From positions 1 to 64,000 of the forward strand of contig NIVC01000881.1 of assembly GCA_002269645.1 (NCBI GenBank): a DNA stretch of 64,000 bases, written 5' to 3'. Shown here piece after piece: positions 1 through 61,959 of this stretch. Position 1 is the stretch's first letter, and each line of letters opens with the position of its first letter. The stretch is from Macrostomum lignano (taxonomy: Eukaryota). Below the pieces are notes generated by a model. It was given only the letters and a program-made list of their open reading frames with translations. It ran no database searches and was not told the origin of the DNA. The translations under genes and the position numbers were made by a program.

Positions 1-2
1 AC

Positions 3-14101: not shown

Positions 14102-14346
<245 letters not shown>

Positions 14347-14506: not shown

Positions 14507-15870
<1,364 letters not shown>

Positions 15871-16721: not shown

Positions 16722-19700
16722 ATGATCTCTAACCAGCGTTTGACTCTGCCGTCAGCTTCTGCTGGCTTCGGTCTTCTGCTTCTGGCGCTGCTGGTGCTGC
16801 AGCAGCTCGGCTCCGCCAGCTCCACTGCCGCCGACGTTAAGCTCAAGGAGACTCCCATGTGAGTTGCCATGCTCAGGAGTGTGAGGATAGAAGACGAAGA
16901 TAGAACATGAAGATAGAACATGGCGATAGAACACGAAGGTAGAACATGAAGATAGAACGTGAAGAAAGAACGTGAAGAAGATAGAACGTGAAGAAAGAAC
17001 GTGAAGAAGATAGAACATGAAGATAGAACGCGAAGATAGAACATGGCGATAGAACACGAAGGTAGAACATGAAGATAGAACGTGAAGAAATAACGTGAAG
17101 AAGATAGAACGTGAAGATAGAACGTGAAGATAGAACGTGAAGATAGAACATGAAGATAGAACACGAAGATAGAACACGAAGATAGAACATGGCGATAGAA
17201 CATGAAGATAGAACACGAAGATAGAACACGAATATAGAACACGAAGATAGAAAACGAAGATAGAACACGAAGACAGAACATGAAGATAGATCATGAAGAT
17301 AGAATGCAAAGATAGAGTATCTCGGACCCGCACACCGGGACATCAGGTTGAAAATCAGAACGCGTGTCAAAGATTGACATGACAGCGAAGATCTGATCGC
17401 GCCTTCTTCCTCCCTCGCTTCCAGCACGGGCCGCTCTGGCTGGTGCATCGTCACTTTGCAGCGCCGCGAGGAGAAGAACTCGTCCTGCGGCAACATGGTG
17501 GAGATGACCATGGAGGGCCTGACCATCGACGAGTCCTCGGTGCCCATCCTGACCGACGCCGCGCTGGCCAACCGGACGATGCACGAGAAACGGCAGCTAT
17601 CGTTGCAGACCTACATTCGCGACTTCGCTTATAGCAAGGCCACGCCTAACTGCACGTTCTATAAGTGAGCGAAAATTTTTCTACTGGCTACTGGTAGTAG
17701 AGGAATTAGAGAGGACAGTTTAAACTTAAGCTCAAGTAGAGACAGGAGTTCAAATTTGCACTTTACGATTTGAACAACCAAAAAACTGGCTGAAATCTAC
17801 GGGTCAACATGCCAATGGTCCTTTAGTTCACAACCGTGTCTAACATGTTCACACCCTGTCTAACATGTTCACACCCTGTCTAACATGTTCACACCCTGTC
17901 TAACATGTTCACACCCTGTCTAACATGTTCACACCCTGTCTAACAGTTTACAGCCCTGTCTAACAGCTCACAACCCTGTCTAACATTTTCACACCCCTGT
18001 CTAACAGTTCACACCCCTATCTAACATGTTCACACTCCTGTCTAACAGTTCACAGCCCTGTCTAACAGTCCCAACTCCTTAATAGTTCATACCCCTGTCT
18101 AACAGCTCACACGCCTGTCCACAATCCTGTTCAACAGTGAACCACACTCTAGCCCAGCAAAGCCCTCTTCACACCCCTTCACACCACCACCCAGGCTGAC
18201 CAACATCGAGAAGACGCAGTGCTGCGTTGGCTACGATGGCAGCAACTGCCAGACGGTTGTCTGCTTCGTCGATCGCGGCGGCTGCCTAAACGGCGGCAAG
18301 TGCGTCAAGCCCAACGTTTGCCAGTGCGCCACCAACTACCTGGGCACAAACTGCGATGAGGACCTCAACGGTGAGTACTGTTAGAACTCTCATGGGCGGG
18401 AACATGCAAGCATGGCCAACTCGCAACTGGTGCAAACTTTGCTGTTGGATTAACAGTATCTCAACTCTGGACTTCCGAATGGCAAATGAAGCAATTTTGT
18501 CAATTTCGCCAGAACTTTGCTGGCTGGCTGGACTCCGGTAGCATTTCTGATAATTATGAAAATTTTGAGTGCATATCTCGGTATCAGTTTTATGTACACT
18601 TGCTTCATTTGCAATTCGGAAGTCCAGAAGGTGAGATATTGTGAACAAGGTACTAAAAATATCTACGAGATAGTACATTTTCAGCGAAACTCACGGATAC
18701 TATTATTACAACTAGATGGGCCCCTCAGCACATTTCCGGATAGGCTACTTTAAGTAGAAAGATAAATCTATAAGCATTTTAATGTCTTTTAGCACAAGAC
18801 TCGCTTATTTGGCCCTCTCCTCACCCGCTCTGGCCGCGTCTTTCCGCACAAAATCTCTACCCCATCGCCCCCCAATTTTTATTGCCTCCCTCGGCCTTCC
18901 CGCTCAAAGCTGCCTGCCTGCCATGTACATTATATTCGCTCGTTTATTGGCCCTCTCACCCCTTTACAGCCGCGTCTTTCCGCACAAAATCTCTACCCCA
19001 TCGCCCCCCAATTTTTATTGCCTCCCTCGGCCTTCCCGCTCAAAGCTGCCTGCCTGCCATGTACATTATATTCGCTCGTTTATTGGCCCTCTCACCCCTT
19101 TACAGCCGCGTCTTTCCGCACAAAATCTCTACCCATCGCCCCCAATTTTTATTGCCTCCCTCGGCCTTCCCGCTCAAAGCTGCCTGCCTGCCATGTACAT
19201 TATATTCGCTCGTTTATTGGCCCTCTCACCCCTTTACAGCCGCGTCTTTCCGCACAAAATCTCTACCCCCGGCCCGCCCCCCCCCCCTGATTTTTCTTGC
19301 CATCCTCGATGTCCAGCTTAAAGTTTCGCTTGTCATGCACATTCTTAGTTACGCTGGCTAATGTACATTACTGCTGCACCATTAGCCAGTTGTTTACGTT
19401 TGCAAGCTTGGCTTATAAATTTATCGAGTCATTTCAACAGTCTTTTCATTAAATAAATAGCTTCTGTATTCTTCTTTGCTACAAGTGAAACTTCATTATT
19501 AAGCATATGTACCTAAGTGGCTCATCTAGCTATTCTAGTACATGTATCTGCAGAGTATTCTCGTATTCTGTGAGCAATGGAAAGCCTGAACGATTTCAAA
19601 CTCACATTTACATGTGGTGCAAATGTTGTAATGATACTCTCAATTCAGTAGTACGTAAAGAGTAGCCGAGTAGCTAAAGTAACTAAAGTATGAAAATCAA

Positions 19701-19914
19701 GGGATTACGTGTAATAAAAACTGCTTGTTTCCCCAACTGCTTCCAGCCATCAAGAACAACCCGAACGAGCAGTATTGCTACTCAGACGACGCCTGTCTGA
19801 CCAAGAAGACCGGCTTCGGCTCGAGTCGGGTTGCGTTCGGGCGCTGCTGCTCCGACGGCACCGGCAGCTTTGGCTACCAGAAGGGCTGCATGAGCTGCAA
19901 GACCAGCACTGTTG
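16722..19914 (+). CDS. Exons 1-4 of giant gene: signal peptide, EMI-like domain, EGF-like domain, TB-like Cys module
   Basis: Signal peptide [33 protein letters not shown]; EMI-like WC...C...C...[10 protein letters not shown]; [27 protein letters not shown]; CYSDDAC...[19 protein letters not shown]. An acceptor at 16652 implies an upstream non-coding exon. Confidence 0.8.
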
Positions 19915-22900
19915 GTAAGATGTCTCATCGACTCTGTCCGACGACTCTGTCCCATCTGTTGACGACTCCGTCTCACCTGTTGACGAGTCTGTCTCACCAG
20001 TTAATGACTCTGTCTCACCTGTTAATGACTCTGTCTCACCTGTTGACGAGTCTGTCTCACCAGTTAATGACTCTGTCTCACCTGTTAATGACTCTGTCTC
20101 ACCTCCTGTTGACGGCTCTGTCTCACATGTTGACGGCTCTGTCTCACATGTTAATGACTCTGTCTCACCTCCTGTTGACGGCTCTGTCTCACATGTTGAC
20201 GAGTCTGTCTCACCAGTTAATGACTCTGTCTCACCTGTTGACGAGTCTGTCTCACCAGTTAATGACTCTGTCTCACCTGTTGACGAGTCTGTCTCACCAG
20301 TTAATGACTCTGTCTCACCTGTTAATGACTCTGTCTCACCTCCTGTTGACGGCTCTGTCTCACATGTTGACGGCTCTGTCTCACATGTTAATGACTCTGT
20401 CTCACCTCCTGTTGACGGCTCTGTCTCACATGTTGACGACTCTGTCTCACCTGTTGACGACTCTGTCTCACCTGTTGATGACTCTGTCTCACCTGTTGAT
20501 GACTCTGTCTCACCTGTTGATGACTCTGACTCACCTCCTGTTGACGGCTCTGTCTCACATGTTGATGACTCTGTCTCACCTGTTGATGACTCTGACTCAC
20601 CTCCTGTTGACGGCTCTGTCTCACCTGTTGACGACTCTGTCTCACCTGTTGATGACTCTGTCTCACCTGTTGATGACTCTGACTCACCTCCTGTTGACGG
20701 CTCTGTCTCACATGTTGATGACTCTGTCTCACCTCCTGTTGACGGCTCTGTCTCACCTGTTGATGACTCTGTCTCACCTCCTGTTGACGGCTCTGTCTCA
20801 CATGTTGATGACTCTGTCTCACCTCCTGTTGACGGCTCTGTCTCACCTGTTGACGACTCTGTCTCACCTGTTGATGACTCTGTCTCACCTCCTGTTGACG
20901 GCTCTGTCTCACATGTTGACGGCTCTGTCTCACATGTTGACGACTCTGTCTCACCTCCTGTTGACGGCTCTGTCTCACCTGTTGACGGCTCTGTCTCACA
21001 TGTTGACGACTCTGTCTCACCTGTTGACGGGGCTCTTACTTTCTGGCTTTCAGCTCTTTGAACACAGCAGTCGTTACCCCTATCTAACCAAGAATGTGTG
21101 CATTCAATCCACTTAGCAAGTTCTTCTTTTTAAATAATACGACCATAAATTCATCACCGCTCGACAGCCAGGAACAATACGGGAGTCGAGGTCGTGCCAT
21201 TCGACACCTGCGTGAGCTACGGCCCGAACTCCTATCGAACGTTCGACGGTCTCACCTTCGAGTATCAGGGCCGGTGCACCTACCTGCTGGCTGGCAGTAC
21301 GAACCCCACTATGAAGTGGTGGTGCACCATCACACTGCTCAACTGCGACAAGTTTGAGACCTGTAGGAAGGTAAAGCTTAGCTTGGAGACGATTTTGTAC
21401 ATTTTGGGTCACACTGGAGATAGACTGTGGGTCACTCAAATAAGATAAAGGGAAATTGATCAGATTCATAACTGCAAAATTGAATAACACAAGGCTATTA
21501 AACTCAAATCTCAATTGCAACACAATTTCAGCAAATAACGATGCGTTTCGACGACATCAACCAGTACGTGGCTCTAGGCTACAATGTCCAGGTCTTCAAG
21601 CTGTCCGGCACCACAGGAGCCACCACTCTCACTGCCAACGTCACCCTGGAGGAGAATTCGGAGCCGAACGAGTGGAACGGAGTGAAAGTCGAACGCAAAG
21701 GTGTCAATGTTTACCTGACCGTTCGCAGCATCGGCGTCAAGCTTAAGTGGGACAACGAGAACTCCGTCTTCGTCACGGTGGACCGCTCGCTTCACAAGAA
21801 CCGAGGCCTGAAGGGCCTCTGCGGCGACTACGATGGCGACGCGACTAACGACTTTGGCAGCGCGCCAAATCCTGCGGCATTCGGCAACCAGTGGAAATCG
21901 GAGTCGGTGAGTGACGAGCTCGGATGGATCTTGTGTGGTGACTGAGTCTGTGTACCTGCGTCCGTTTTCCGGTACACCCTGTGTGAATTGGCATGACTTG
22001 CACGGGTTCCGCAATCGCTAGAAATCAGCATGGCTCACCGGTCCTTTCCCATCTTGCGCAGTGCCAAGACATCGCCAATGTGCCAATCCACTGCGAGAGC
22101 CCCGAGGACCAGGCGGCCGCGGAGGGCGACTGCCGGCCAATCAACAACGTGTTCTTCCAGTGCCATAGCAAGATCAGCCCCACCCAGGTGGTCAAGAGGT
22201 GCGTGCAGGACATGTGCATCCTGAAGAAGAAAGGCGAGACCAGCGACTCAGCCAAGTCATCGGTGCTGTGCTCCCACCTGAGCGCCTACTCGTACCAGTG
22301 CTCGCTGGAGGGTATCTGCATCGACTGGCGCGGCAGCACCATGTGCCGTGAGTAGAACTGACAACTCACCTGGCAACGACTGACCCGTCGCAGCCAATAG
22401 GCCATTAGAGGCACTCGCGTGCTTGTAGATTTTATAATTCAAAACGGACCAGAGGGTTTTAGTATTTGAAAATTCGTTTTTTTCTAAAAAATTAAAATCC
22501 AATTCAAAACCGCGCCAAAATATGTGTTTTGAAGCAATTATTAAATTAATTAAAATAGCTATGGCAAGTGCTCATGAAACATCTTTTAAAACTCAGATAT
22601 TTAAAATGTTAATACTTTTGAACGTGAATTTTAGTGCTTGACAATTCTTCAACTAAATTTGATTGGCGCCAATTTGAATTTGATTTTAGTTAATGAAGAA
22701 AAACAAAGGAAGCCCAAAGTTCAACTCAATTTTTCGAACAAATCCAGAAGTACAGCAATTACCAGTATCTTTACTGCTTTATTTACACAGAACCTCATTC
22801 TAAGTTCTTAGGAACTACTAAATATTTAGAAGCTATAACTAAGACACTTCTGAGACGACTTCTTTAATTTACGCATCAAACCCGGAAAAATATCCGTTTT

Positions 22901-25900
22901 GCAGCTCAGAGCTGCCCGGCCCTGATGACCTGGAGCGAGTGCGCCAGCGCCTGCCCGACCACCTGCGCCAATTACGATCAGCTGAAATCTGCCACCTGCG
23001 AGAGCAGCATGGTGCCCAGGTGCAAATGCGGCTCCGGCTACGTCCATTACAAAAGTACATGCATCCGGCCGAACGAGTGCCCGTGCACTTATAACTCGGT
23101 AGAGTACATGCCAGGCAGCAACCTGGTGGTTGACTGCAGCACCTGGTAAGTGCGATGCTGCTTGCTCTCTGGCTCTAAGCTAGAACTTTTTATCTGTATT
23201 CTAGTAGGTGCTAGTCCCACCTTTAACAGGTATTAGCTCTAATCTAACCGGTATAAGCTCCAGTCTAAGCGGTATAAGCTCCAGTCTAACCGGTATAAGC
23301 TCCTGTCTAAGCGGTATAAGCTCCTGTCTAAGCGGTATAAGCTCCAGTCTAAACGGTATAAGCTCCAGTCTAACCGGTATAAGCTCCTGTCTAAGCGGTA
23401 TAAGCTCCTGTCTAAGCGGTATAAGCTCCAGTCTAACCGGTATAAGCTCCAGTCTAAGTGGTATAAGCTCCTGTCTAACCGGTATAAGCCCCAATCTAAC
23501 CGGTATAAGCTCCAGTCTAACCGGTATAAGCTCCAGTCTAACCGGTATAAGCTCCAGTCTAAGTGGTATAAGCCCCAATCTAACCGGTAAAAGCTCCTGT
23601 CTAACCGGTAAAAGCTCGCATTTACTCGCTATACAAGTTCAGCCCTGATCACTCATCCTTTCCCCTTTCAGCAACTGCGCCAATGGACGCTGGCAGTGCA
23701 CCTACAACCCGAACTGCCCGAAGATGTGCTCAATCACTGGTAGCCACATCGTCACCTTCGATGGCGCCAAGATGGACTTCAACCCGATGGGCTGCGCGTA
23801 CACCCTGCTGGAGCCGGTGTCTGGCGCCAATGACTCGCGCCTGCAAGTCCAGGTAACCATGGAGCCGAGCCCGGAGTACCTGCTGGCAGTCACCGCCGAC
23901 TCCCAGTTCGTCAATCTGCCCAAGATGATCACCGTCAAGTACCGCGGCGTCACCATCCAGCTGAAGTCGGTGACGCTGGCGGCCGGCACCCGACCATCCG
24001 TGATCATCGATGGAGTCGACTTCACGAATTCGCTGCCGTACGAGAATGTGCGCAGCCAGATCCTTGTGCGCCAGCTCACCTCCTTCTACGCCATGGTGAA
24101 GATCGGCAACCACCTCAGCGTGTACTTCGACGGCTACAGAACTGTCGAACTGAAGGGCGCCAAATTGCTGAGTCAGAAGGTGCGTTTTGGTTGATGTTCG
24201 CCTATCCAAAACTATTCTAAAATGTGTGTTAATCCGCGTCTCAAATGTGTGTGAATCCATTCTTGACATGTTTGTGAATCCATGTCTAACATGTGTGAAT
24301 CCATGTCTAACATGTGTGTGAATCCATGTCTAGCATGTGTGTGAATCCATGTCTAATATGTGTTTATCCATGTCTAACATGTGTGTGAATCCATGTTAAA
24401 TGTGTGTGAATCCATGTCTAACATGTGTTTATCCATGTCTAACATGTGTGAACCCATGTTTAATGTGTGTGAATCCATGTTAAATGTGTGTGAATCCATA
24501 TTTAATGTGTGTGAATCCATGTTTAAAGTGTGTGAATCCATATTTAATGTGTGTGAATCCATGTTTAATGTGTGTGAATCCATATTTAATGTGTGTGAAT
24601 CCATGTTTAAAGTGTGTGAATCCATGTTTAATGTGTGTGAATCCATGTTTAATGTGTGTGAATCCATATTTAATGTGTGTGAATCCATGTTTAATGTGTG
24701 TGAATCCATCTTTAATGTGTGTGAATCCATGTTAAATGTGTGTGAATCTTGTCCTAAGGTGCGAATTCAATTGCAATTCAGCTATGAACACTTGCCTAAA
24801 ATGTGTGAATCCACAGACAACAGCTGTGAATGTGTGCCTTATAGCCATTAATCCTGGCCTACAATTTTTGAATTGTCCTTCGCTATTTACGCTCGTATAA
24901 ATCCAGTCCTCACGCTAGCGAGTCAATTACCAACTTTCAGATCGAAGGCCTATGCGGAAACTTTGATAGCAAAACGGAGAACGACCTGCACACCAAGGGC
25001 TCCGATATGATTGCGCCCCCCGTGCAGGTGGCGCAGTCCTACGTGTCCGGCTCCTGCAGCAAGACCGCCGCGGAGCTGCCCAGCCCCGGCTCGACTTCTC
25101 AGTCTGTAAGTCAGAGTCCACTCCCTCTCCTGACTGATTCTGAGAGTCCACTCCCTCTCCTGACTGATTCTGAGAGTCCACCCCCTCTCCTGACTAATTT
25201 TGAGAGTCCGCCCCCTCTCCTGACTGAGTTTAAGTCAGTCAGTGGAGCACTGATCATGCCCGATGTCATAAATAAAACCTGTGCCCATGGAATATCACTT
25301 GCACAGTGAACGAGTCACAGTGAACGAGTCACAGTGAACGAGTCACAGTGAACGAGTCACAGTGAACGAGTCACAGTGAACGAGTCACAGTGAACGAGTC
25401 ACAGTGAACGAGTCACAGTGAACGAGTCACAGTGAACGAGTCACAGTGAACGAGTCACAGTGAACGAGTCACAGTGAACGAGTCACAGTGAACGAGTCAC
25501 AGTGAACGAGTCACAGTGAACGAGTCACAGTGAACGAGTCACAGTGAACGAGTCACAGTGAACGAGTCACAGTGAACGAGTCACAGTGAACGAGTCACAG
25601 TGAACGAGTCACAGTGAACGAGTCACAGTGAACGAGTCACAGTGAACGAGTCACAGTGAACGAGTCACAGTGAACGAGTCACAGTGAACGAGTCACAGTG
25701 AACGAGTCACAGTGAACGAGTCACAGTGAACGAGTCACAGTGAACGAGTCACAGTGAACGAGTCACAGTGAACGAGTCACAGTGAACGAGTCACAGTGAA
25801 CGAGTCACACTGAAGTGAACGTAGTTTTAATTTACACAAAAGTTTGCATGCAATGCCCAAAATAGTCAGACAGGTACATTCTGATTAAAATAATTATTTT

Positions 25901-49900: not shown

Positions 49901-52900
49901 TGATTTAGAAAAGTTGCGCCTGTCATCACCAGTCCCATTTAATTTGAACCGGCCAACAGCCACATCTTTTAGTAATCCAAATGAGAACATTCTAATTGAA
50001 GTGAACCCTGCAGCTGAATCGACCAGCGGAGTAGAGATTGGACGAATTGAGCTGAGGTTTACAGCCCCGAAGTAACAGCCGTTCGAGTGTACAACAAGCC
50101 GACGCTTTCTCAACCAAATTGGGACACTTACTATTTCTCTGGCAGCAATCTCACGAACTGCAAGTCAGACCTAATGGTGTGCCTTAGTACAGTCTCTATT
50201 GTGTCGAAAATGCTTCGATTCGAGGTCTTCTACACATCTGTAACTGACAAAAACAGCATCGACCTCCAAATTGGAATATATGGATGTTTCAAGCAAGGCT
50301 CCACAACTTCACCGTCGACAACGACCACGCCCACATCGACGACTACCACTCCAACGTCAACAACCACAACAACGCCTTCAACAACTACCACCACTCCGTC
50401 GTCAACAACAACCACAACGGCTTCAACAACTACAACACCAACTTCGACGACCACAACCTCGACGTCGACTACGACAACGCCGCCGTCGACCACAACCACT
50501 ACACCAACGTCGACAACAACCACAACGCCTTCAACAACAACTACAACACCAACATCGACGACGACAACTACAACACCTCCTTCTACAACTACGACCTCAA
50601 CATCGACAACCACAACGCCAACGTCGACTACAACTACGCCAACGTCGACTACGACTACGCCAACGTCGACAACTACAACGCCTACATCGACGACGACAAC
50701 TACAACACCTCCGTCTACAACTACGACCTCAACATCGACAACCACAACGCCAACGTCGACTACAACTACGCCAACGTCGACTACGACTACGCCAACGTCG
50801 ACAACTACAACGCCTACATCGACGACAACAACACCTACAACAACAACGACCTCGACGTCGACGACCACAACTCCACCGTCTACAACAACTACGACACCAT
50901 CATCAACAACGACAACCTCAAGCTCAACAACGACCACAGCACCAACGACGACAACCTCGACGTCGACCACCACGACATCGCCGTCGACGACTACTACGCC
51001 GCCTTCGACAACCACGACTACAGAGAACATTCTTGCAAAGAGCACCTCCTTGCCGCAGCGTTGCATTGAGGAAGACGGCATGGCGAACAATGGTCCAATT
51101 GGGTTGAGCGACATCTCTGTGAGTGCTTCCACTCAAGGTGTTGGACTCATTGCGCAAAGCGAGTTGAACCTCCTTCGTCCGTCGACGAGTGGTCTTGATG
51201 TCAACCGCGCACCTTCAGTAACCCGCAAAGATGAAAGCATTTCCTTTGACTTCAATGTCAGTGGCGACGACGGCAGTCAGTCGATTATCGGAAAGCTCAG
51301 CATCATTTCAAGCACTCCAGGATTGATTACGTCAATCCAGCTGTATGAATCGTCTGGTGCTGCTGCAACCTTCACATTAGTAAAATCTGCCAACAGTGCT
51401 GAGGACGTGGCCACGTGTAGCAATAACTTTATCGAGTGTGCCTCAATCGGCGGCCTTGGTCTACAGACAAACAGAATCAGAATCAAGTTCAACTTCATCA
51501 ATACGAACAACCTTCCGGTCAATGTTCAGGTAAGCATGCTAGGATGTTACACAAGACTTTCGACCACAACATCAACGTCGACGTCGACGTCGACGTCTAC
51601 GACAACATCCACATCAACCACAACTACGCCGCCGTCGACCACAACTACTACGCCAACGTCGACAACAACCACAACGCCTTCAACAACAACTACAACACCA
51701 ACATCGACGACCACAACTACAACACCGACTTCGACGACGACAACTACAACACCGACTTCGACGACGACTACTACAACACCGACTTCGACGACGACAACTA
51801 CAACACCTACTTCGACGACGACTACTACAACACCTACTTCGACAACAACCACAACCTCGACGTCGACTACGACAACGCCGCCGTCGACCACAACTACTAC
51901 ACCAACGTCGACAACAACCACAACGCCTTCAACAACAACTACAACACCAACATCGACGACGACAACTACAACACCTACTTCGACGACGACAACTACAACA
52001 CCTCCGTCTACAACTACGACCTCAACATCGACAACCACAACGCCAACGTCGACTACAACTACGCCAACGTCGACTACGACTACGCCAACGTCGACAACTA
52101 CAACGCCTACATCGACGACAACAACACCTACAACAACAACGACCTCGACGTCGACGACCACAACTCCACCGTCTACAACAACTACGACACCATCATCAAC
52201 AACGACAACCTCAAGCTCAACAACGACCACAGCACCAACGACGACAACCTCGACGTCGACCACCACGACATCGCCGTCGACGACTACTACGCCGCCTTCG
52301 ACAACCACGACTACAGAGAACATTCTTGCAAAGAGCACCTCCTTGCCGCAGCGTTGCATTGAGGAAGACGGCATGGCGAACAATGGTCCAATTGGGTTGA
52401 GCGACATCTCTGTGAGTGCTTCCACTCAAGGTGTTGGACTCATTGCGCAAAGCGAGTTGAACCTCCTTCGTCCGTCGACGAGTGGTCTTGATGTCAACCG
52501 CGCACCTTCAGTAACCCGCAAAGATGAAAGCATTTCCTTTGACTTCAATGTCAGTGGCGACGACGGCAGTCAGTCGATTATCGGAAAGCTCAGCATCATT
52601 TCAAGCACTCCAGGATTGATTACGTCAATCCAGCTGTATGAATCGTCTGGTGCTGCTGCAACCTTCACATTAGTAAAATCTGCCAACAGTGCTGAGGACG
52701 TGGCCACGTGTAGCAATAACTTTATCGAGTGTGCCTCAATCGGCGGCCTTGGTCTACAGACAAACAGAATCAGAATCAAGTTCAACTTCATCAATACGAA
52801 CAACCTTCCGGTCAATGTTCAGGTAAGCATGCTAGGATGTTACACAAGACTTTCGACCACAACATCAACGTCGACGTCGACGTCGACGTCTACGACAACA

Positions 52901-55900
52901 TCCACATCAACCACAACTACGCCGCCGTCGACCACAACCACTACGCCAACGTCGACAACAACCACAACGCCTTCAACAACAACTACAACACCAACATCGA
53001 CGACCACAACTACAACACCGACTTCGACGACGACAACTACAACACCGACTTCGACGACGACAACTACAACACCGACTTCGACGACGACAACTACAACACC
53101 TACTTCGACGACGACTACTACAACACCTACTTCGACAACAACCACAACCTCGACGTCGACTACGACAACGCCGCCGTCGACCACAACTACTACACCAACG
53201 TCGACAACAACCACAACGCCTTCAACAACAACTACAACACCAACATCGACGACGACAACTACAACACCTACTTCGACGACGACTACTACAACACCTACTT
53301 CGACAACAACCACAACCTCGACGTCGACTACGACAACGCCGCCGTCGACCACAACTACTACACCAACGTCGACAACAACCACAACGCCTTCAACAACAAC
53401 TACAACACCAACATCGACGACGACAACTACAACACCTACTTCGACGACGACAACTACAACACCTCCTTCGACGACGACAACTACAACACCGACTTCGACG
53501 ACGACTACTACAACACCAACTTCGACGTCGACTACGACAACGCCGCCGTCGACCACAACTACTACACCAACGTCGACAACAACCACAACGCCTTCTACGA
53601 CCACGACACCGCCGTCGACGACAACTACGACACCATCAACTACGACCACTACACCAACAACCACGACAACGTCGACGTCGACTAGTACTACAACGCCTTC
53701 CACTACTACAGTGCCGCGTGTTTGTATTGAAATTGATGGACTTTCGAACCCATTCATCATCTCACCATCGAATATTCAAGTAATCGGTGGAACACAGTCT
53801 GGATACACGGCTTCTGATTTAGAAAAGTTGCGCCTGTCATCACCAGTCCCATTTAATTTGAACCGGCCAACAGCCACATCTTTTAGTAATCCAAATGAGA
53901 ACATTCTAATTGAAGTGAACCCTGCAGCTGAATCGACCAGCGGAGTAGAGATTGGACGAATTGAGCTGAGGTTTACAGCCCCCGAAGTAACAGCCGTTCG
54001 AGTGTACAACAAGCCGACGCTTTCTCAACCAAATTGGGACACTTACTATTTCTCTGGCAGCAATCTCACGAACTGCAAGTCAGACCTAATGGTGTGCCTT
54101 AGTACAGTCTCTATTGTGTCGAAAATGCTTCGATTCGAGGTCTTCTACACATCTGTAACTGACAAAAACAGCATCGACCTCCAAATTGGAATATATGGAT
54201 GTTTCAAGCAAGGCTCCACAACTTCACCGGCGACAACGACCACGCCCACATCGACGACTACCACTCCAACGTCAACAACCACAACAACGCCTTCAACAAC
54301 TACCACCACTCCGTCGTCAACAACAACCACAACGGCTTCAACAACTACAACACCAACTTCGACGACAGCTACTACAACACCAACTTCGACGACCACAACC
54401 TCGACGTCGACTACGACAACGCCGCCGTCGACCACAACCACTACACCAACGTCGACAACAACCACAACGCCTTCAACAACAACTACAACACCAACATCGA
54501 CGACGACAACTACAACACCTCCTTCTACAACTACGACCTCAACATCGACAACCACAACGCCAACGTCGACTACAACTACGCCAACGTCGACTACGACTAC
54601 GCCAACGTCGACAACTACAACACCTCCTTCTACAACTACGACCTCAACATCGACAACCACAACGCCAACGTCGACTACAACTACGCCAACGTCGACTACG
54701 ACTACGCCAACGTCGACAACTACAACGCCTACATCGACGACAACAACACCTACAACAACAACGACCTCGACGTCGACGACCACAACTCCACCGTCTACAA
54801 CAACTACGACACCATCATCAACAACGACAACCTCAAGCTCAACAACGACCACAGCACCAACGACGACAACCTCGACGTCGACCACCACGACATCGCCGTC
54901 GACGACTACTACGCCGCCTTCGACAACCACGACTACAGAGAACATTCTTGCAAAGAGCACCTCCTTGCCGCAGCGTTGCATTGAGGAAGACGGCATGGCG
55001 AACAATGGTCCAATTGGGTTGAGCGACATCTCTGTAAGTGCTTCCACTCAAGGTGTTGGACTCATTGCGCAAAGCGAGTTGAACCTCCTTCGTCCGTCGA
55101 CGAGTGGTCTTGATGTCAACCGCGCACCTTCAGTAACCCGCAAAGATGAAAGCATTTCCTTTGACTTCAATGTCAGTGGCGACGACGGCAGTCAGTCGAT
55201 TATCGGAAAGCTCAGCATCATTTCAAGCACTCCAGGATTGATTACGTCAATCCAGCTGTATGAATCGTCTGGTGCTGCTGCAACCTTCACATTAGTAAAA
55301 TCTGCCAACAGTGCTGAGGACGTGGCCACGTGTAGCAATAACTTTATCGAGTGTGCCTCAATCGGCGGCCTTGGTCTACAGACAAACAGAATCAGAATCA
55401 AGTTCAACTTCATCAATACGAACAACCTTCCGGTCAATGTTCAGGTAAGCATGCTAGGATGTTACACAAGACTTTCGACCACAACATCAACGTCGACGTC
55501 GACGTCGACGTCTACGACAACATCCACATCAACCACAACTACGCCGCCGTCGACCACAACCACTACGCCAACGTCGACAACAACCACAACTCCTTCAACA
55601 ACAACTACAACACCAACATCGACGACCACAACTACAACACCGACTTCGACGACGACAACTACAACACCGACTTCGACGACGACAACTACAACACCGACTT
55701 CGACGACGACAACTACAACACCTACTTCGACGACGACAACTACAACACCGACTTCGACGATGACAACTACAACACCGACTTCGACGACGACTACTACAAC
55801 GCCGACTTCGACAACGACTACTACAACACCAACTTCGACGACCACAACCTCGACGTCGCCTACGACAACGCCGCCGTCGACCACAACGACTACACCAACG

Positions 55901-58900
55901 TCGACAACAACCACAACGCCTTCAACAACAACTACAACACCGACATCGACATCGACAACGATAACTACAACACCTCCTTCGACGACGACAACTACAACAC
56001 CCACAACGTCGACCACAACCTCGACGTCGACTACAACAACGCCGCCGTCGACCACAACTACTACACCAACATCGACAACAACCACAGCGGCTTCGACATC
56101 TACAACTCCAAGTTCGACAACAACTACAAAACCAACTTCGACGACGACAACTACAACACCAACTTCGACGGCAACGACCACGACACCGCCGTCGACAACA
56201 ACCCCGTATACGACAACAAACACAACATCTGCAACGACTACTACGACACCAACAACATCAACCACAACTCCACCGTCGTCTACAACCACAACATCTACTT
56301 CGAAAACTACTCTGTCGTCTTCAATATCGACGTCAGTAACCACTTCTCCTGGGATTTCAGGCACACCTACATGTGTGATGATTGAGCCGAGTGAGTATTT
56401 GTTTTATATTATTATTTTGTTCCTGATGGTGCTGAACATACGAATTTTACTTATTTGAAAACCGTTTTTTAGCGACTCCTCCTCCATGTCTTGCTCGCGG
56501 TGACTGCGAGTGCATGGTGGCTATGAGCGAAGTCTCCAAGGAGTTGCAGTTGTCTGAGTCTTATCCAAGAGACGTTTGGGTTGAGTTGGACGGCACCTCA
56601 GGTTTGTCCTCTCCTTTAGAAAAGATTAATGAAGGTGACATGCTGGAGTCTGGTGTGGTTATTCGGATAGACTGCGGCCAGTGCAGCTGCAGCAATGGCG
56701 CTCTCCGGTGCAGTAAGACGAACTGCTCGAACGATTGTCAGTGGGGCCAGTGGAAGCCGTGGGGCTCCTGCTCATCGACCTGCGGCACCGGTGTTCGGTA
56801 CAGAAATCGCACCGTCGCTTCTCCTGCTCGGTTCGGCGGCGAGCCGTGTCAGCCTAAAGACTTCCAGGTAAGCTGTGTCCAAAATCCGTTCCTACAACGG
56901 AATGGAGCCGAGCTCCGTTAGCAATCGATAGTTTGTCTGACTAGCCAAATATAGGGGAGATTTCGCACCAGTCTCCCTGGCCACTTTACAGGCTGTTTAG
57001 ACATTCCCGTTATTAACTGCTAATCTCTGAAGACATATTCGAAGACAGTTTCATTCTATCTGAAGCCTTAGTCGACGTGAGATCCGTCTTATTCAGTACA
57101 GACCGGTGCTTTAGTTGAAGCCGCTAGCTTATTGTAGATAAAACAGTCGTGTGTTCTGAACTAATTCTTTGAATTGTTCAATTATTCAGGAATTTGAGCT
57201 GTGCAACACTCAGAGATGTCCGTGCGTGTGGAGTCAGTGGTCTGCCTGGTCCGACTGCTCTCAGACCTGCAACGGCGGAGTAAAGACCCGGACGAGGACG
57301 CCCCAGGGCGACTGCCTGCTAGAGGACGCAACCACCGAGACAGCCCTGTGCAACGTTCATCCGTGCGGCTCGACCACTACTTCGCCAAGCTGCTCCGAGG
57401 GCAAGGTGATGCGACAGTGCAGCACCACGTCCTGCCCTTACACCTGTGGTCATGTCACTAACGAGACCTGTTCAGACCAGCTGGCCTGCTCAACTGGCTG
57501 CTTCTGCGAGCAAGGCTTCGTGTTCGACGAGAAAGCCCGGGCCTGCGTGAAGCCGGACCAGTGCACCTGCGACCTGACCACCCTGAGCTGCGGCCTCTGC
57601 TCGCAGGGCCGCTGCGTCAACGGCGTTGCCACCTGCGTGCCAACAACAAACTGCGACTGCACCTGGGGACCCTGGTCAGACTGGGAGCCCTGCTCGAAGG
57701 CCTGCGACGGCGGCTCAAGGACTCGAACCCGGGCCCAGGCTACCAGCCGTCGCGGCACCGGTCGAGCCTGCGTTGGCCTCGCCTCTGAGTCAGAGCCATG
57801 CAATACGGGCCGCTGCCCAGGCTGCTTGGACCGCTTCGGCAACCGGGTGCCGCCTGGCGAAACCATGCCCTCCGAGAACCCCTGCGAGATCTGCTACTGC
57901 AGCTACTTCACCGGCAGGCCCGAGTGCATGCCGAAACGCCCAGACGACGCGTCGAATCCGGCGCCGCAGTGGTCTGATTGGTCGGAATTCTCAGCCTGCA
58001 GCGCGCCGTGCGGCACGGGCACCAAGCGCCGGAGCCGCGCCTGCGTCCGCCTGTGCGTCAACGACACGCGCAGCTGCGCTCCGGACGCCAGGGGCCGCAT
58101 GGACGCCGATCAGCAGTCCTGCAACCGGCAGGATTGCGCCCCACCAGTCGACTGTCAAGTCTCCGACTGGACTAACGGCACCTGCTATGCCAACTGTGAC
58201 GGCGTCAACCCCACCGCCACCGGCCAACAGCTGCGGCTCCGCCAGATCACCAGGCAGGCGGCCAACGGTGGCAAGGCCTGTCCGTCAACTTACGAAGTTG
58301 TTCCGTGCAGCAAGCAGTGCAAAGTGGACTGTCTGGTAGGCCAGTGGTCCGCCTGGAGCGAGCGAGTCAAGAACTGCGTCGGCACCGGCTGCAATCCCAG
58401 CTGCGGCGTTGGCGAGAGGGAGAGAACCCGGCCAGTGCTGCGGCCGGCGGCCAACGGAGGCCAGGCGTGTCGAGACCACGAGTTCGAGCCCGTGCTGATG
58501 CCCTGCAACGAGACCGTCTGCTCCGGCCCAGAGACTCTCATCAGCTGCGCCACCAAGTGCTGGCGAACTTGCTCGGATGTGCGCGCCAACAAGCAGTGCC
58601 AGGACGTCGGCTGCATGCAGGGCTGCGGCTGCGCTGGAGACAAGGTCAGGGAGGCCGACACCTGCGTGGCGGTGGCCGAGTGCAGCTGCGAGCATCCCGA
58701 GAACGCGAGCCGCCTGATGCCGCCGGGCTCGGTGGTGAACAAGGCCTGCAACAAGTGCACCTGCGTCAGCGGCCAGTTCGTCTGCGAGGAGAAGAGCTGC
58801 GCCCAGGACTGCGTCTGGTCGGCTTGGCAGAAAGTTGGCGGCTGCAACGTCACCTGCGGCTCCGGCAAGCAGACCTGGACCAGGTAAATTCGTAGAGACT

Positions 58901-59760
58901 GGCTCTGGATACGCCTCTGACCCTGTGACCAACAGCCAGTGGACACTGAACCCTGGACAGAGAGCCATTATTAGACACTGAACCCTGGACAGAGAGCCAT
59001 TAATAGACACTGAACCCTGGACAGAGAGCCATTAATAGACACTGAACCCTGGACAGACAGCCATTAATAGACACTGAACCCTGGACAGAGAGCCATTAAT
59101 AGACACTGAACCCTGGACAGAGAGCCATTATTAGACACTGAACCCTGGACAGAGAGCCATTATTAGACACTGAACTCTGGACAGAGAGCCATTATTAGAC
59201 ACTGAACTCTGGACAGAGAGCCATTATTAGACACTGAACTCTGGACCCGACCTCCCCTCAGATCCATCGCAACCCCAGCTGCCAACGGCGGTGCCGAGTG
59301 CGTCGGGCCGACCAGCCGCGTCACCGACTGCTTCGGCGACGAGGGTGCCTGCTGCAACCCCAATGACGCGTACGTGGACACCGGCCGATGCGAGACCACC
59401 TGCGCCCAGCTGCTGAACCCGGAGCTCGCGCAGCCGCAGTCTAACTGCCAGCCGGGTTGCCAGTGCAAGCCGGGCATGGCCAGGAACGCCAACGGCAGCT
59501 GCGTCAGCATCCAGGACTGCTTCGCCTGCCAGGTGAGCGGCGGGCGGCGGCGGTTGTGGGCTAACTAGCTAACTAGCTAACTAACTAACTAACTAACTGA
59601 CTAACTAACTAACTAACTAACTAGCTAACTGACTAACTGACTAACTAACTAACTAACAAGCTAACTAACTAACTAACTAACTGACTAACTAACTAACAAG
59701 CTAACTAACTAAATAACTAACCTAGCTAAATAGCTAAATAGCTAAATAGCTAACTAGATG

Positions 59761-59791
<31 letters not shown>

Positions 59792-59812
59792 GACTAACTA
59801 ACTAACTAACTG

Positions 59813-59843
<31 letters not shown>

Positions 59844-59888
59844 GACTAACTAACTAACTGACTAACTAACTAACTAACTAACTAACTG

Positions 59889-59923
<35 letters not shown>

Positions 59924-59952
59924 GACTAACTAACTAACTAACTAACTAACTG

Positions 59953-60007
<55 letters not shown>

Positions 60008-60100
60008 GACTAACTAACTAACTAACTGACTAACTAACTAACTAACTAACTAACTGACTAACTAACTAACTGACTAACTAACTAACTAACTAACTAACTG

Positions 60101-60135
<35 letters not shown>

Positions 60136-60164
60136 GACTAACTAACTAACTAACTAACTAACTG

Positions 60165-60215
<51 letters not shown>

Positions 60216-60252
60216 GACTAACTGACTAACTAACTAACTAACTAACTAACTG

Positions 60253-60303
<51 letters not shown>

Positions 60304-61418
60304 GACTAACAGGTGAACGGCGTCGCCTGGCCCAGCGGCCGTGTGGACGTGGACCGGGCCAACTGCAGCAAGCGGCTGTGCCTTCATGGCCAGCTGTCAA
60401 CACAGCCGCTCGAACTCTCCGAGGTGCCGCCCTGCACGCTGTCCGACGAGGTGCAGGCCGGCACCGCCGGATCCGAAGCGCAGCGGGTGATGGACAAGTC
60501 CGGCTGCTGCTACCGGGCCAGCCTGCGGGCCTGCGCCAGGGGCAGCACCCTGCTGAGGGAGGCCAAACGTCCGGACGGCCGCTTCTGCCGGTTCGCTACC
60601 CCAGTCAGCATCGACCGGTGCGTAGGCGCCTGTCCGGGTAGCAACTCTGTGCACGTCACTGAGCAGGTGAGTCCGAGCCTTGATGTGGGTAGCCTAATGG
60701 GCAGTGCCTAAGAGAGGCAGAGTCTCAGGCACTGAGGGAGAGGCAGATTCTCAGGCACTGAGGGAGAGGCAGATTCTCAGGCACTGAGGGAGAGGCAGAG
60801 TCTCAGGCACTGAGGGAGAGGCAGATTCTCAGGCACTGAGGGAGAGGCAGATTCTCAGGCACTGAGGGAGAGGCAGATTCTCAGGCACTGAGGGAGAGGC
60901 AGATTCTCAGGCACTGAGGGAGAGGCAGATTCTCAGGCACTGAGGGAGAGGCAGATTCTCAGGCACTGAGGGAGAGGCAGATTCTCAGGCACTGAGGGAG
61001 AGGCAGAGTCTCAGGCACTGAGGGAGAGGCAGATTCTCAGGCACTGAGGGAGAGGCAGATTCTCAGGCACTGAGGGAGAGGCAGATTCTCAGGCACTGAG
61101 GGAGAGGCAGATTCTCAGGCACTGAGGGAGAGGCAGATTCTCAGGCACTGAGGGAGAGGCAGATTCTCAGGCACTGAGGGAGAGGCAGATTCTCAGGCAC
61201 TGAGGGAGAGGCACCAGCAGGAATCCAGTGAAACGCACAGCTGCCCCACTGCACCACTGCAGGGCACGGTGAAGGTGATGGGCGAGTGCTCCTGCTGCAA
61301 CCCGACGGGCTACCGGGCCAAGCCGGCCATCACGGCGGCCTGCACGGACGGCGGCAGCATGCAGCTGACTCTGTACGCTATCGAGGGCTGCAAGTGCTCG
61401 GCCGGATTCAAGCCGTGA
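16722..61418 (+). CDS. SSPO-like: Giant secreted SCO-spondin-like / gel-forming mucin-like protein, ~9,970 aa, 27 coding exons
   Basis: Exons: 16722-16858, 17425-17664, 18195-18370, 19747-19914, 21168-21370, 21532-21906, 22062-22347, 22905-23145, 23672-24179, 24941-25105, 27362-27605, 28723-29168, 29828-29975, 30081-30357, 30626-31167, 32314-32742, 33053-33169, 33296-33415, 33515-33640, 33717-33808, 33914-35147, 35624-56390, 56473-56867, 57190-58883, 59262-59532, 60313-60666, 61263-61418. All junctions are GT-AG with matching phases. The total is 29,913 nt after restoring two single-base deletions in the large exon. Domain motifs read through the junctions. Confidence 0.88.
16887..17302. repeat. 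Intronic minisatellite, ~13-bp unit (GAAGATAGAACRY)
   Basis: Degenerate tandem array in intron 1 of the giant gene. Confidence 0.92.
17835..18135. repeat. Intronic minisatellite, 20-bp unit (CCCTGTCTAACATGTTCACA)
   Basis: Tandem array in intron 2, degenerating towards the acceptor. Confidence 0.92.
18775..19400 (+). mobile_element. Dispersed repeat family member 1, with internal 136-bp tandem unit (~3.5 copies) and 3' hairpin
   Basis: Shares TTTTAG..AAGACTCG..TTGGCCCTC, TTTCCGCACAAAAT, TTTATTGCC and GCTGGCTAATGTACATTA blocks with 29270-29430 and 31415-31840. Perfect 10-bp stem CTGGCTAATG/CATTAGCCAG at 19354-19389. Confidence 0.7.
19935..21030. repeat. Intronic minisatellite, 21/24-bp unit (GTTGACGACTCTGTCTCACCT), ~50 copies
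   Basis: Fills intron 4 and produces the spurious LSHLLMT ORF extension. Confidence 0.95.
21168..32600 (+). CDS. Exons 5-16 of giant gene: three VWD-C8-TIL-VWC assemblies (VWF D1-D2-D3-like)
   Basis: VWD starts [27 protein letters not shown] and [13 protein letters not shown]; GLCGDYDG / GLCGNFD / GLCGNFDG motifs; C8 domains ([15 protein letters not shown]; [17 protein letters not shown]); TIL domains (C...EC.SACPTTC). Confidence 0.92.
23222..23620. repeat. Intronic minisatellite, 21-bp unit (AACCGGTATAAGCTCCAGTCT), ~18 copies
   Basis: Tandem array in intron 8. Confidence 0.95.
24225..24750. repeat. Intronic minisatellite, 21-bp unit (GTGTGAATCCATGTTTAATGT), ~24 copies
   Basis: Tandem array in intron 9 with degenerate flanking copies. 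Confidence 0.95.
25107..25235. repeat. Short 30-bp tandem repeat (GAGTCCACTCCCTCTCCTGACTGATTCTGA), ~4 copies
   Basis: Immediately after the exon 10 donor. Confidence 0.85.
25303..25812. repeat. Perfect 14-bp minisatellite (TCACAGTGAACGAG), ~36 copies
   Basis: Homogeneous array in intron 10. Confidence 0.97.
27688..28715. repeat. Intronic minisatellite, 21-bp unit (CTCAACAATCCCGTACCGATC / ...CCTGTT), ~48 copies
   Basis: Fills intron 11; two unit variants segregate 5' versus 3'. Confidence 0.95.
29270..29430 (+). mobile_element. Dispersed repeat family member 2 (single-unit copy)
   Basis: Same conserved blocks as 18775-19400, in intron 12. Confidence 0.65.
30375..30490. repeat. 30-bp tandem repeat (GGTTCTATCTACCAGATTGCTGTAACAGCT), ~3.5 copies
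   Basis: Intron 14. Confidence 0.85.
31415..31840 (+). mobile_element. Dispersed repeat family member 3, with internal ~120-bp tandem duplication
   Basis: Same conserved blocks as 18775-19400, in intron 15. Confidence 0.65.
32620..33940 (+). CDS. Five LDL-receptor class A repeats of giant gene (end of exon 16 to start of exon 21)
   Basis: Motifs [61 protein letters not shown] and [16 protein letters not shown], on small mostly phase-1 exons. Confidence 0.92.
32810..33005. repeat. Degenerate ~30-35-bp tandem repeat (ACTGAGGATCTGGAAGG core)
   Basis: Recurrent core motif in intron 16; units are poorly conserved. Confidence 0.5.
33914..35147 (+). CDS. Exon 21: PTS - discoidin-like domain (type A) - PTS - sixth LDLa repeat
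   Basis: ORF 33908-35188: Thr-rich tract, domain CIEEDGM...MLGC (34253-34738), second Thr-rich tract, then [37 protein letters not shown]. Donor at 35148. Confidence 0.88.
35624..56390 (+). CDS. Exon 22: 20.8-kb mucin exon (~6,920 aa) of Thr/Ser/Pro tracts alternating with 18 discoidin-like domains
   Basis: Covered by ORFs 35611-42534, 41844-50075 and 50087-56458, joined by two 1-nt deletions relative to sibling repeat copies (about 42465 and 50066). Acceptor TTGCAG at 35623, donor GTGAGT at 56391. Confidence 0.85.
56473..61418 (+). CDS. Exons 23-27: VWC, seven TSP1 repeats, three TIL domains and C-terminal cystine knot (CTCK)
   Basis: TSP1 motifs [49 protein letters not shown] and others; TIL C..TC..C..GC.C; [22 protein letters not shown]...ECSCCNP...C.DG...IEGCKC; stop TGA 61416-61418. 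Confidence 0.9.
58935..59246. repeat. Intronic minisatellite, 32-bp unit (AGACACTGAACCCTGGACAGAGAGCCATTATT), ~9.5 copies
   Basis: Fills intron 24. Confidence 0.95.
59563..60310. repeat. (ACTA)n microsatellite with ACTG variants, ~185 units
   Basis: Occupies essentially all of intron 25 and runs directly into the acceptor (…ACTAACAG). Confidence 0.97.
60712..61212. repeat. Intronic minisatellite, 26-bp unit (GAGGGAGAGGCAGATTCTCAGGCACT), ~19 copies
   Basis: Fills intron 26. Confidence 0.95.
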
Positions 61419-61959
61419 GTTCGAGTTTCGAGCGAGCAATGAAAAACTTCAATAATGAAAGAGACAATACAAACTGCTTATTAACCTGTGCGGATTTCTG
61501 GTGGCGGGAGCAAAGCTTACAAAGTATTGTAATTCTAAGGGATTGAAGAAACTATTTTTCATATATTCTATTACATTGGCAGGCAAATAGCAATGTGTCT
61601 GTTCCAACCGCTGTGATGCGCATACGATAAATATCTTGCGGATTGCCCCAATTTATTCCTAATATTATCCTTAAAATAGAGCCAGATGGATTCAGATTAC
61701 ACAGTTTTTTTGCGAAGAAGCTGTGATTAAATATAGCAACTCTATTCATTGCATTGCAAAGCTCCGCCCATTCTTACGGTGCTTTTCTGTGTTAAGCTTT
61801 CGTTACTTTGTCAAAAGAGAAAATTAAGGAAGGCGCGTGACTTGTTAGGGACACTGCAATGTCAGCAGGGGTTTCCACCCCGGTCTGAATCTACTTCCGT
61901 GTCCATCAGAGAGGGGTCTGAGATTGTGGGTGAGAGAGGGGTCAAAAAGGGTGAAGTCA

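Follow-up and report, generated by a model that had tools for sequence, protein, structure and literature searches.

A candidate gel-forming mucin of about 10,000 residues in Macrostomum lignano, paralogous to the adhesive protein Mlig-ap2 and present in adhesive footprints

The stretch of Macrostomum lignano DNA analysed here (the window: 64,000 nucleotides at positions 1 to 64,000 of contig NIVC01000881.1, assembly GCA_002269645.1) probably carries, on the plus strand at 16722-61418, a real single gene for a secreted mucin of ~10,000 amino acids and ~1 MDa, whose ~29.9 kb of coding sequence is fragmented in the public annotation. Published proteomics show that the protein is made and that it is present in the material the worms leave on glass, and protein alignments show the gene to be a collinear paralogue (sister) of Mlig-ap2 at both ends. 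The product falls within a published class of invertebrate mucins, as a so far uncharacterised paralogue of an adhesive protein already published, and is no new kind of protein. The gene has not previously been assembled or described as one protein: literature searches for RNA815_290, RNA1310_22614, gland or single-cell expression and Macrostomum SCO-spondin or mucin found no description of it.

Gene structure

On the plus strand between 16,700 and 61,400 many short Cys-rich open segments flank three very long open frames. They resolved into 27 exons and 26 introns, all canonical GT-AG with donors mostly GTGAGT or GTAAGT, and both the counts and the outer limits were those given in an earlier interpretation of the window made without database searches (the sequence-only reading). 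The resulting model is phase-compatible throughout. Twenty-three junctions were solved with guide proteins, accepting GT/GC...AG sites that kept the frame open and agreed best with the guide; the other 3 were read directly off the sequence and were likewise phase-compatible, junction 33808|33914 restoring the LDLa consensus and junctions 35147|35624 and 56390|56473 being in phase 1, with donors GTAAGC/GTGAGT and pyrimidine-rich acceptors. Translation begins from the ATG at 16722 with a hydrophobic signal peptide, and the frame closes with a stop codon ending at 61418. Once both frame breaks in exon 22 (see below) are mended, the coding sequence measures 29,913 nt and the product 9,970 aa, with an unglycosylated mass of 1,035 kDa and an isoelectric point (pI) of 5.2. 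The domain order is signal peptide, EMI-like, EGF, D1, D2, D'D3, five LDLa, a Pro/Thr/Ser-rich (PTS) segment, a globular unit (bead), PTS, LDLa and 18 PTS-bead units; the array is followed by a VWC-like module, seven TSP1 interleaved with three TIL, and a cystine knot.

The public resources hold this gene in pieces, as the sequence-only reading had expected of automatic annotation. P0003 (BOX15_Mlig003285g1, M. lignano, 599 aa), a model of the C-terminus, was 100% identical when the largest C-terminal exon was used as query; P0121, found by exhaustive profile search, is a 1,680-aa model of the N-terminus of the same gene with frame errors; and the transcriptome carries the gene as three unconnected transcripts of 7,877, 2,215 and 3,531 nt. 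A related copy, 90-97% identical to the window, lies at the end of contig NIVC01002293.1 (L001) of the assembly Mlig_3_7; the annotation there is fragmentary because the contig breaks off within the array, 4.7 kb upstream of the 599-aa fragment that is annotated. As a separate observation, the segment of this contig that matches window positions 59906-63998 is present twice, ~7.3 kb apart (6167-10106 and 14135-17361); it comprises the last exon and the 3' flank and represents a local duplication that is absent from the window.

Peptides in the footprint proteome

Dataset S2 of Wunderer et al. (2019; PMC6410801) contains the mass spectrometry of adhesive footprints. Among 37 peptides checked, 36 matched the model exactly and covered exons 2 to 27, while the single non-matching peptide differed at one residue and fits P0121. 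Two peptides cross exon junctions, a 12-residue one between exons 23 and 24 and a 20-residue one between exons 26 and 27. The peptides are filed there under three groups: the 7,877-nt transcript (2,625 aa, MUC5B/hemolectin-like annotation, 16 peptides), the unannotated 2,215-nt transcript (738 aa; RNA815_290.1 / RNA1310_22614) and the 3,531-nt transcript (1,176 aa, 13 peptides), which has a sea-urchin SCO-spondin fragment as its best UniRef50 match (e = 6e-47). The footprint score was 66 for the N-terminal group and 53 for the C-terminal group. The repeated part of the protein is represented as well, by a 12-residue peptide unique to bead 1 and by unique peptides from exon 22 beads at amino acids 2254, 2311 and 5692-5726. 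Exon 22 bead peptides are grouped with N-terminal peptides under the 7,877-nt transcript, which connects the VWD block with the array on one mRNA. The secreted role, in mucus or adhesion, claimed by the sequence-only reading gains support from this recovery of N-terminal, bead and C-terminal peptides from footprints.

Two further transcripts of the dataset, a second MUC5B/hemolectin-like one (8,908 nt, 2,969 aa) and a second SCO-spondin-like one with TSP1 (3,489 nt, 1,163 aa), have peptides unlike those mapped here. The ap1 and ap2 transcripts had been removed from the footprint search database by the authors (PMC6410801), and these two transcripts therefore probably represent a third family member.

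Domains at both ends

Exon 1 (16722-16858) encodes the start codon and the signal peptide (translated as amino acids 1-33, 16722-16820); its donor GTGAGT at 16859 joins 17425, in agreement with the orthologue P0122, and a 10-residue tryptic footprint peptide follows the predicted ...ITGR junction. Exons 2-4 (17425-17664, 18195-18370 and 19747-19914), collinear with P0122, encode the EMI-like module, one EGF and a 6-Cys 'TB-like' module, and the footprint peptide QLSLQTYIR together with one 17-residue peptide map there. No Pfam match was found for EMI at E <= 5 or for the TB-like module, and EGF gave weak Pfam matches only. The Cys pattern closing the EMI-like module, a motif read off the sequence, resembles the EMI C-terminus.

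Exons 5-16, spanning 21168-32742, encode D1, D2 and D'D3 (three VWD-C8-TIL-E assemblies plus a TIL'-E' pair) and the start of LDLa1, as assigned from Pfam and from collinearity with VWF and mucins. With junctions placed by guide proteins they lie at 21168-21370, 21532-21906, 22062-22347, 22905-23145, 23672-24179 and 24941-25105 (exons 5-10) and at 27362-27605, 28723-29168, 29828-29975, 30081-30357, 30626-31167 and 32314-32742 (exons 11-16). LDLa2-LDLa5, recognised with Pfam Ldl_recept_a, occupy exons 17-20 plus the opening 24 bases of exon 21 (33053-33937, in the pieces 33053-33169, 33296-33415, 33515-33640, 33717-33808 and 33914-33937). Above the Pfam gathering score the 5' segments contained three VWD, two C8, three TIL and five LDLa domains; the C8 of the second D assembly (D2) had no Pfam match. 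The N-terminal 1,240 aa were collinear with VWF D1-D2-D'D3, MUC5B, MUC5AC and MUC2 at E values of 1e-114 to 1e-128, and D'D3, including the TIL'-E' pair before D3, aligned with VWF 773-1234. In this alignment, whose VWF numbering was verified against the CGLC motif at 159-162 as printed, the D3-specific triplet C1097/C1099/C1101 of VWF is kept as CECVC.

The remainder of exon 21 (33938-35147) holds PTS, bead 1 (34250-34747), PTS and LDLa6 (35033-35143), as assigned from the translation, a bead profile and Pfam, in which LDLa6 scored below gathering (19.8 bits). Beyond the array, exons 23-25 (56473-56867, 57190-58883 and 59262-59532), with junctions agreeing with P0001 and P0003, encode the VWC-like module (E 1.6e-3, below gathering) and then seven TSP1 interleaved with three TIL, all ten of the latter above the gathering score in the 3' segments. 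Exons 26-27 (60313-60666 and 61263-61418) encode a Cys-rich spacer, the C-terminal cystine knot with the pattern CxGxC ... CSCC ... CKCS, and the stop codon. Pfam matches of the knot stayed below gathering (DAN 3e-3, Cys_knot 7e-3), and a profile of the last 174 aa searched against PDB sequences had no match at E <= 1. A structure model made from the C-terminus of P0003 had an overall predicted local distance difference test score (pLDDT) of 54, with blocks within residues 81-160 at 70-84, and the best Foldseek matches of this low-confidence model, with E values between 1e-3 and 1e-2, were Norrin, the VWF CTCK (4nt5) and sclerostin. On the basis of the Foldseek matches, the weak Pfam matches and the Cys pattern, a CTCK is the likely, model-based assignment of the C-terminus.

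Pfam searches of the central and C-terminal pieces detected no VWD 3' of the PTS array, none downstream of 31220, and no Mucin2_WxxW (CysD) match in any piece. The toolkit of three VWD, five LDLa, seven TSP1 and three TIL and the absence of a fourth VWD after the PTS, both claimed by the sequence-only reading, were accordingly recovered by Pfam; from the rest of its domain string, EMI, the TB-like module and the D2 C8 went without a Pfam match, and VWC, the sixth LDLa and CTCK found the sub-threshold matches given above.

The bead-and-linker array

Exon 22 (35624-56390; 20,767 nt) consists of 18 beads and T/S/P-rich linkers, as delimited by open reading frames (ORFs), the bead profile and composition. 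The profile, a hidden Markov model built from five divergent bead types (alignment A1), found exactly 19 copies in the protein, bead 1 between LDLa5 and LDLa6 and 18 after LDLa6, precisely the arrangement given in the sequence-only reading. Nine of the 19 belong to type B, seven to type A and three are unique (8, 7 and 3, respectively, among the exon 22 beads); each is ~165 aa long with 4 Cys, and the main super-repeat, measured from bead coordinates and pairwise identity, is an A-B pair, same-type copies being 99.2-100% identical in DNA. Tandem Repeats Finder at a high score threshold reported nothing in the array, because its longest period is 500. The beads total 3,129 aa; the linkers, composed of T 65%, S 17% and P 12%, sum to 4,191 aa, with 1-4 charged residues in each linker and lengths of 26-300 aa in exon 22; the central region of ~7,300 residues has a pI of 4.9 and contains 20 Thr-rich segments with 82% Ser+Thr.

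In sequence the bead is an orphan. Four bead queries covering the five divergent types matched no Pfam family at E <= 0.1, PF00754 included; the bead profile run against 1.84 billion representative proteins had one match, P0121 from the same gene; and the bead alignment found none in a word-indexed database of 5.8 billion sequences, where the matches obtained were no longer than ~1,025 aa and giants such as SSPO and Mlig-ap2 may escape. AlphaFold2 run on A1 produced a confident beta-sandwich (pLDDT 87, predicted TM score 0.85), for which Foldseek listed from the PDB, in order, the CASPR2 discoidin domain, CBM32, neuropilin b1/b2, and FVIII and FV C2, at E 2e-4 to 1e-2 and TM 0.4-0.58, the later matches being other galactose-binding-domain-like folds; the top matches to discoidin domains lay at E 2e-4 to 1e-3 with TM ~0.5, and the top 50 were mostly discoidin, CBM32, neuropilin b1/b2, FV/FVIII C2 and APC10. 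All five types have kept C2 and C163, one close to each end of the bead, without exception. The structure model and its matches, with which the invariant end cysteines fit, point to a discoidin/CBM32 fold at fold level only: the term 'discoidin-like' used in the sequence-only reading can be kept in that sense, and finds no counterpart in Pfam.

Relationship to Mlig-ap2

Mlig-ap2 (GenBank MH586845 / QAX24810) is a 14,794-aa protein with N-terminal vWD, TIL and LDLa domains, C-terminal TSP1 and 46 central repeats (21 of 255 aa and 25 of 221 aa); it is essential for attachment, as demonstrated by RNA interference (RNAi), and was published as lacking significant homology to known proteins (PMC6410801). 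Its sequence was taken from the optically recognised text of Fig. S12 in the supporting information. BLASTP gave two collinear alignments: one pairs ap2 302-1307 with residues 539-1609 of the model (E 7e-91, 27% identity in 1,124 columns), the other the final 943 residues of ap2 with residues 9025-9964 (E 1e-89, 31% identity in 995 columns). Novelty of the architecture is not supported: the sequence-only reading had named an already described protein of this exact architecture as its refutation, and Mlig-ap2, a published protein with the same layout (PMC6410801), partly answers to that.

Identity of the window gene with either Mlig-ap1 or Mlig-ap2 was rejected, the antibody epitope peptides being absent from all six frames of the window; since the ap2 epitopes are among those missing, the gene is distinct from Mlig-ap2. 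It has its own orthologues in other macrostomids, as the following comparisons show. P0122, whose complete N-terminus came from a 3-kb assembled contig in the search with the N-terminal segment, is collinear from the signal peptide to TIL2 and shares 68% identity with the final model in an alignment of 953 aa, compared with 29% with ap2. The transcript-derived P0001, P0002 and P0004 are likewise nearer to the window gene, with 85, 81 and 72% identity over the largest C-terminal exon and 83, 78 and 65%, in collinear alignments, over the C-terminus of the model. The ap2 and window lineages therefore split before those species.

The two proteins come from the same species, both occur in footprints, and they share the VWD/C8/TIL assemblies, LDLa, an array of Cys-bracketed globular units and T-rich linkers, the VWC-like module, the TSP1/TIL block and the cystine knot. 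They differ at the head, where the paper counted 2 vWD in ap2 and the window gene has 3 plus the EMI-like/EGF head, and most profoundly in the middle: the 46 repeats of ap2 are basic (pI 10.8 and 9.9, 18-21% K+R), in contrast to the 19 beads and uncharged mucin-type linkers, 65% Thr, of the window protein with its pI of 4.9. Comparison of the bead with ap2 repeats A and B and the pre-repeat domains by hmmsearch and hhalign was not significant (E 0.008-0.3; probability 0.8%), and a shared origin of bead and ap2 repeat is suggested by their position in the protein and by the Cys at both ends of the unit.

Integrity of the locus

Several observations weigh against an intact single gene for a secreted, polymer-forming mucin. 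No single transcript spans the array, and the bead number of 19 depends on the assembly of units that are 99-100% identical. The frame is broken twice in the assembled sequence, so that a truncated allele is a possibility for this copy. Tubulin, PDI and apolipophorin were likewise present in the footprint samples; as these include cytosolic proteins too, presence in footprints does not prove secretion, and the portion of the PNA (peanut agglutinin) pull-down dataset examined contained no peptides of the gene. For polymerisation, all three VWD domains have xGLC in place of CGLC, the cystine knot is weakly supported, and the VWF insertion bearing C1142 is absent from the protein. In VWF, C1099 and C1142 have roles in multimerisation through intermolecular D3-D3 disulfides.

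It is extremely improbable that the region consists of two or three adjacent genes (VWD/LDLa, PTS/bead and TSP1/CTCK). The fragmentary public gene models and transcripts, none of which reads through, would agree with such a division, but the array exon lacks a separate start context and is entered and left by phase-matched GT-AG introns, and the one 7,877-nt transcript holds both N-terminal and exon 22 peptides. At the other end, the 1,176 aa encoded by the C-terminal transcript exceed the 962 residues that follow the array, so this transcript should reach into the array. For the paralogue Mlig-ap2, moreover, RNAi with probes from the 5', middle and 3' parts established a single gene (PMC6410801).

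The single gene favoured here was claimed by the sequence-only reading to form one reading frame, which does not hold for the sequence as assembled: the open sequence of the exon 22 region is spread over frame 1 (35608-42531), frame 3 (41808-50072) and frame 2 (50051-56455), and the unrepaired translation stops at residue 4394. Comparison of copies located the first shift at 42464-42467 (~42466, plus strand), where the window has AA and eight paralogous copies have AAA (CTTGCAAGAGC versus CTTGCAAAGAGC), and the second at 50065-50069 (~50068, plus strand), with CCCC in the window and CCCCC in six copies (ACAGCCCCGAAG versus ACAGCCCCCGAAG). Both changes are losses of a single homopolymer base inside units that are 99.2-100% identical, and the ~4,900 codons downstream contain no further stop or indel; for these reasons they are most likely residual consensus errors in a near-identical tandem array. 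The peptides of the variant bead (46,131-46,625) at amino acids 5692-5726 and all C-terminal peptides lie downstream of frameshift 1.

That the frameshifts are real, this genomic copy being a truncated allele or a young pseudogene and the peptides coming from other copies of the polyploid genome, is unlikely yet carries more weight than the division into several genes. Apart from the frame breaks themselves, it could draw on at least two sequence variants, the peptide ...SIQLYK fitting P0121 and not the window, and on the identity of L001 to the window of just 90-97%. Against it stand the nature of the losses, in units so alike that polishing is least reliable there, the clean run of codons that follows, and splice sites that are all intact. 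A residue in bead 1 (34250-34747) is Glu in the window and Lys in the published peptide and in P0121; at least two copies or alleles must therefore be expressed, as expected for a polyploid genome.

Comparison with other mucins and SCO-spondin

According to Lang et al. (2016, PMC4948705), invertebrate gel-forming mucins group with SCO-spondins, and mucin-like proteins of lophotrochozoans typically carry F5_F8 domains; in insect hemolectin three VWD units are followed by F5_F8 and then two more VWD units (PMC4948705). Limpet pedal mucus (P-vulgata_3 and P-vulgata_6) includes SCO-spondin-like proteins of VWD/LDLa and of TSP1/CTCK make-up, one of which aligns with Mlig-ap2 (PMC7333891). Lang et al. 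(2016) name no flatworm in their main text, and no 19-fold array of sequence-orphan beads turned up in that paper or in PMC7333891. The invertebrate mucins of Lang et al. (2016), with three VWD-C8-TIL and PTS, nearest to SCO-spondin and with F5_F8, form the class to which the window protein belongs.

Gel-forming MUC2, MUC5AC and MUC5B share with it a collinear D1-D2-D'D3 (E 1e-114 to 1e-124), a central PTS region interrupted by globules (CysD in their case) and VWC plus a cystine knot; the window protein differs by lacking CysD and a D4 after the PTS and by having LDLa and TSP1. The transcriptome annotation lists Drosophila Hml as a match, and hemolectin/hemocytin has a '3 + 2' structure, whereas no VWD follows the beads here. 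SCO-spondin is approached in the three D assemblies, the LDLa cluster, TSP1 interleaved with TIL/SCOR, the probable cystine knot and, at fold level, a putative discoidin-type domain beside LDLa, which agrees with the SCO-spondin-type toolkit recognised in the sequence-only reading: three VWD-C8-TIL with an LDLa cluster and the TSP1/TIL interleaving are all present. However, PTS linkers totalling 4,191 aa and 19 beads take the place of a single F5/8C region in the window protein, and SSPO is not known to have a PTS array; its TSP1 number 7, while vertebrate SSPO has ~25 TSP1 repeats; its EMI is without a Pfam match; and it is found outside the animal. The further proposal that a spondin scaffold had been converted into a mucin has no support as to its direction, and the mucin-like state may be older than the spondin state.

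A flatworm SCO-spondin orthologue with an internal, Reissner's-fibre-like role in the nervous system would account for the shared toolkit and for the sea-urchin SCO-spondin fragment as best UniRef50 match of the C-terminal transcript (e = 6e-47). We consider it very unlikely, given that the protein was recovered from material outside the animal, that it contains 4,191 aa of mucin-type linker and just 7 TSP1, and that the best human match of the N-terminal transcript is MUC5B.

Proposed role

The protein is inferred to be the worm's gel-forming mucin, a neutral-to-acidic sister of the basic adhesive Mlig-ap2. The N-terminal third would act as a D1-D2-D'D3 module of the VWF, gel-forming mucin and SCO-spondin type, and the C-terminal tenth as a VWC-TSP1/TIL block closing in a cystine knot. 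If VWF and mucins are a guide, the knot may form tail-to-tail dimers and D3 head-to-head disulfides, a disulfide-linked polymerisation that would give linear or branched polymers. The 20 uncharged Thr-rich segments are expected to be densely O-glycosylated and extended, and the 19 beta-sandwich beads could serve as rigid spacers, possibly as lectin-like or surface-binding cross-linkers, like CysD in MUC2/MUC5AC/MUC5B. Its most likely role is that of a gel-forming mucin of the external secretions which is left on the substrate; it may also contribute to adhesion directly, but with lower probability.

That it is a third working component of the duo-gland adhesive, produced alongside Mlig-ap1 and Mlig-ap2 by the adhesive gland cells, and not a general mucus protein, seems improbable, although less so than an internal SCO-spondin function. 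The presence in the footprint proteome with scores of 66 and 53 and the collinearity with the paralogue Mlig-ap2 speak in its favour. Yet no adhesive vesicles are left after double RNAi of ap1 and ap2, and in situ screens found ten gland transcripts, each of which maps to one of these two genes (PMC6410801); the middle transcript RNA815_290.1 is not among the ten, and no paper mentioning it was found. The linkers are without the basic residues of the ap2 repeats (pI 4.9 versus 10.8 and 9.9), and mucus adhering to test surfaces was noted by the authors themselves (PMC6410801, Fig. S16).

Flanking sequences, introns and spurious open reading frames

The flanks of the gene (1-16,700 and 61,419-64,000) consist of satellites and minisatellites and showed no convincing neighbouring gene. 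The ORFs at 7324-8508 (minus strand), 11431-12233, 13815-14372 and 61997-62830 and those on the minus strand at the 5' end were rejected as genes, being minisatellite translations; the Pfam 'hits' of flank ORFs were low-complexity artefacts, nearly all without a significant matched stretch. In the ~10 kb upstream, unrelated satellites whose units measure 19, 21, 23, 43 and 22 nt follow one another, then (CTGT)64 and (TATC)342 (6299-6860, 7132-8389, 8698-9357, 9998-10453, 11649-12192, 14101-14354 and 14505-15870).

At least 10 of the 26 introns also carry minisatellites of 10-94 copies whose units are 8-32 nt long, in several cases exactly 21 nt (16882-17304, 17825-18119, 19940-21029, 23224-23617, 24221-24748, 25302-25814, 27689-28716, 58942-59246, 59561-60310 and 60712-61213), and some of them are open in frame and coding-like (for example 19919-21058 and 27663-28650). 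A dispersed element of ~120-136 nt, with the core ...CCGCACAAAATCTCT.ACCCC...CCCAATTTTTATTGCC..., occurs in three introns (18833-19269, 29242-29463 and 31477-31753), two of its copies being short tandem arrays; it is possibly related in type to short interspersed elements or miniature inverted-repeat transposable elements. Within the array (37506-56364), dozens of off-frame or minus-strand ORFs of 200-340 aa on both strands were likewise rejected: they are rich in Q/R/H/L or N/D/Y/H, recur with the array period and are by-products of the ACN-rich Thr codons.

Implications

The gene model provides a complete and checkable account of one of the largest proteins of an animal used as a model for regeneration and bioadhesion, for which public resources offer unconnected fragments. 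As an abundant, uncharacterised footprint component, its product is relevant to models of attachment, release and mucus trails. It also adds a further example of globular beads within a mucin domain, of the discoidin fold here and CysD in vertebrate mucins.

The proven glue protein Mlig-ap2 has a mucin-type sister, and the SCO-spondin-like frame shared by the two ties flatworm adhesion to the evolution of gel-forming mucins. A tentative scenario, which we regard as a plausible minority option, is that ap2 and the window mucin arose from a duplicated SCO-spondin-like mucin, the window protein keeping an ancestral job as a lectin-studded mucus polymer, with discoidin-fold beads that would bind Gal/GalNAc glycans on neighbouring chains or on surfaces, and the ap2 array turning basic for attachment to substrates. 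If this is true, the ap2 repeat, so far called novel, would be a degenerate discoidin domain, and the temporary adhesion of flatworms would be traceable to ordinary mucus.

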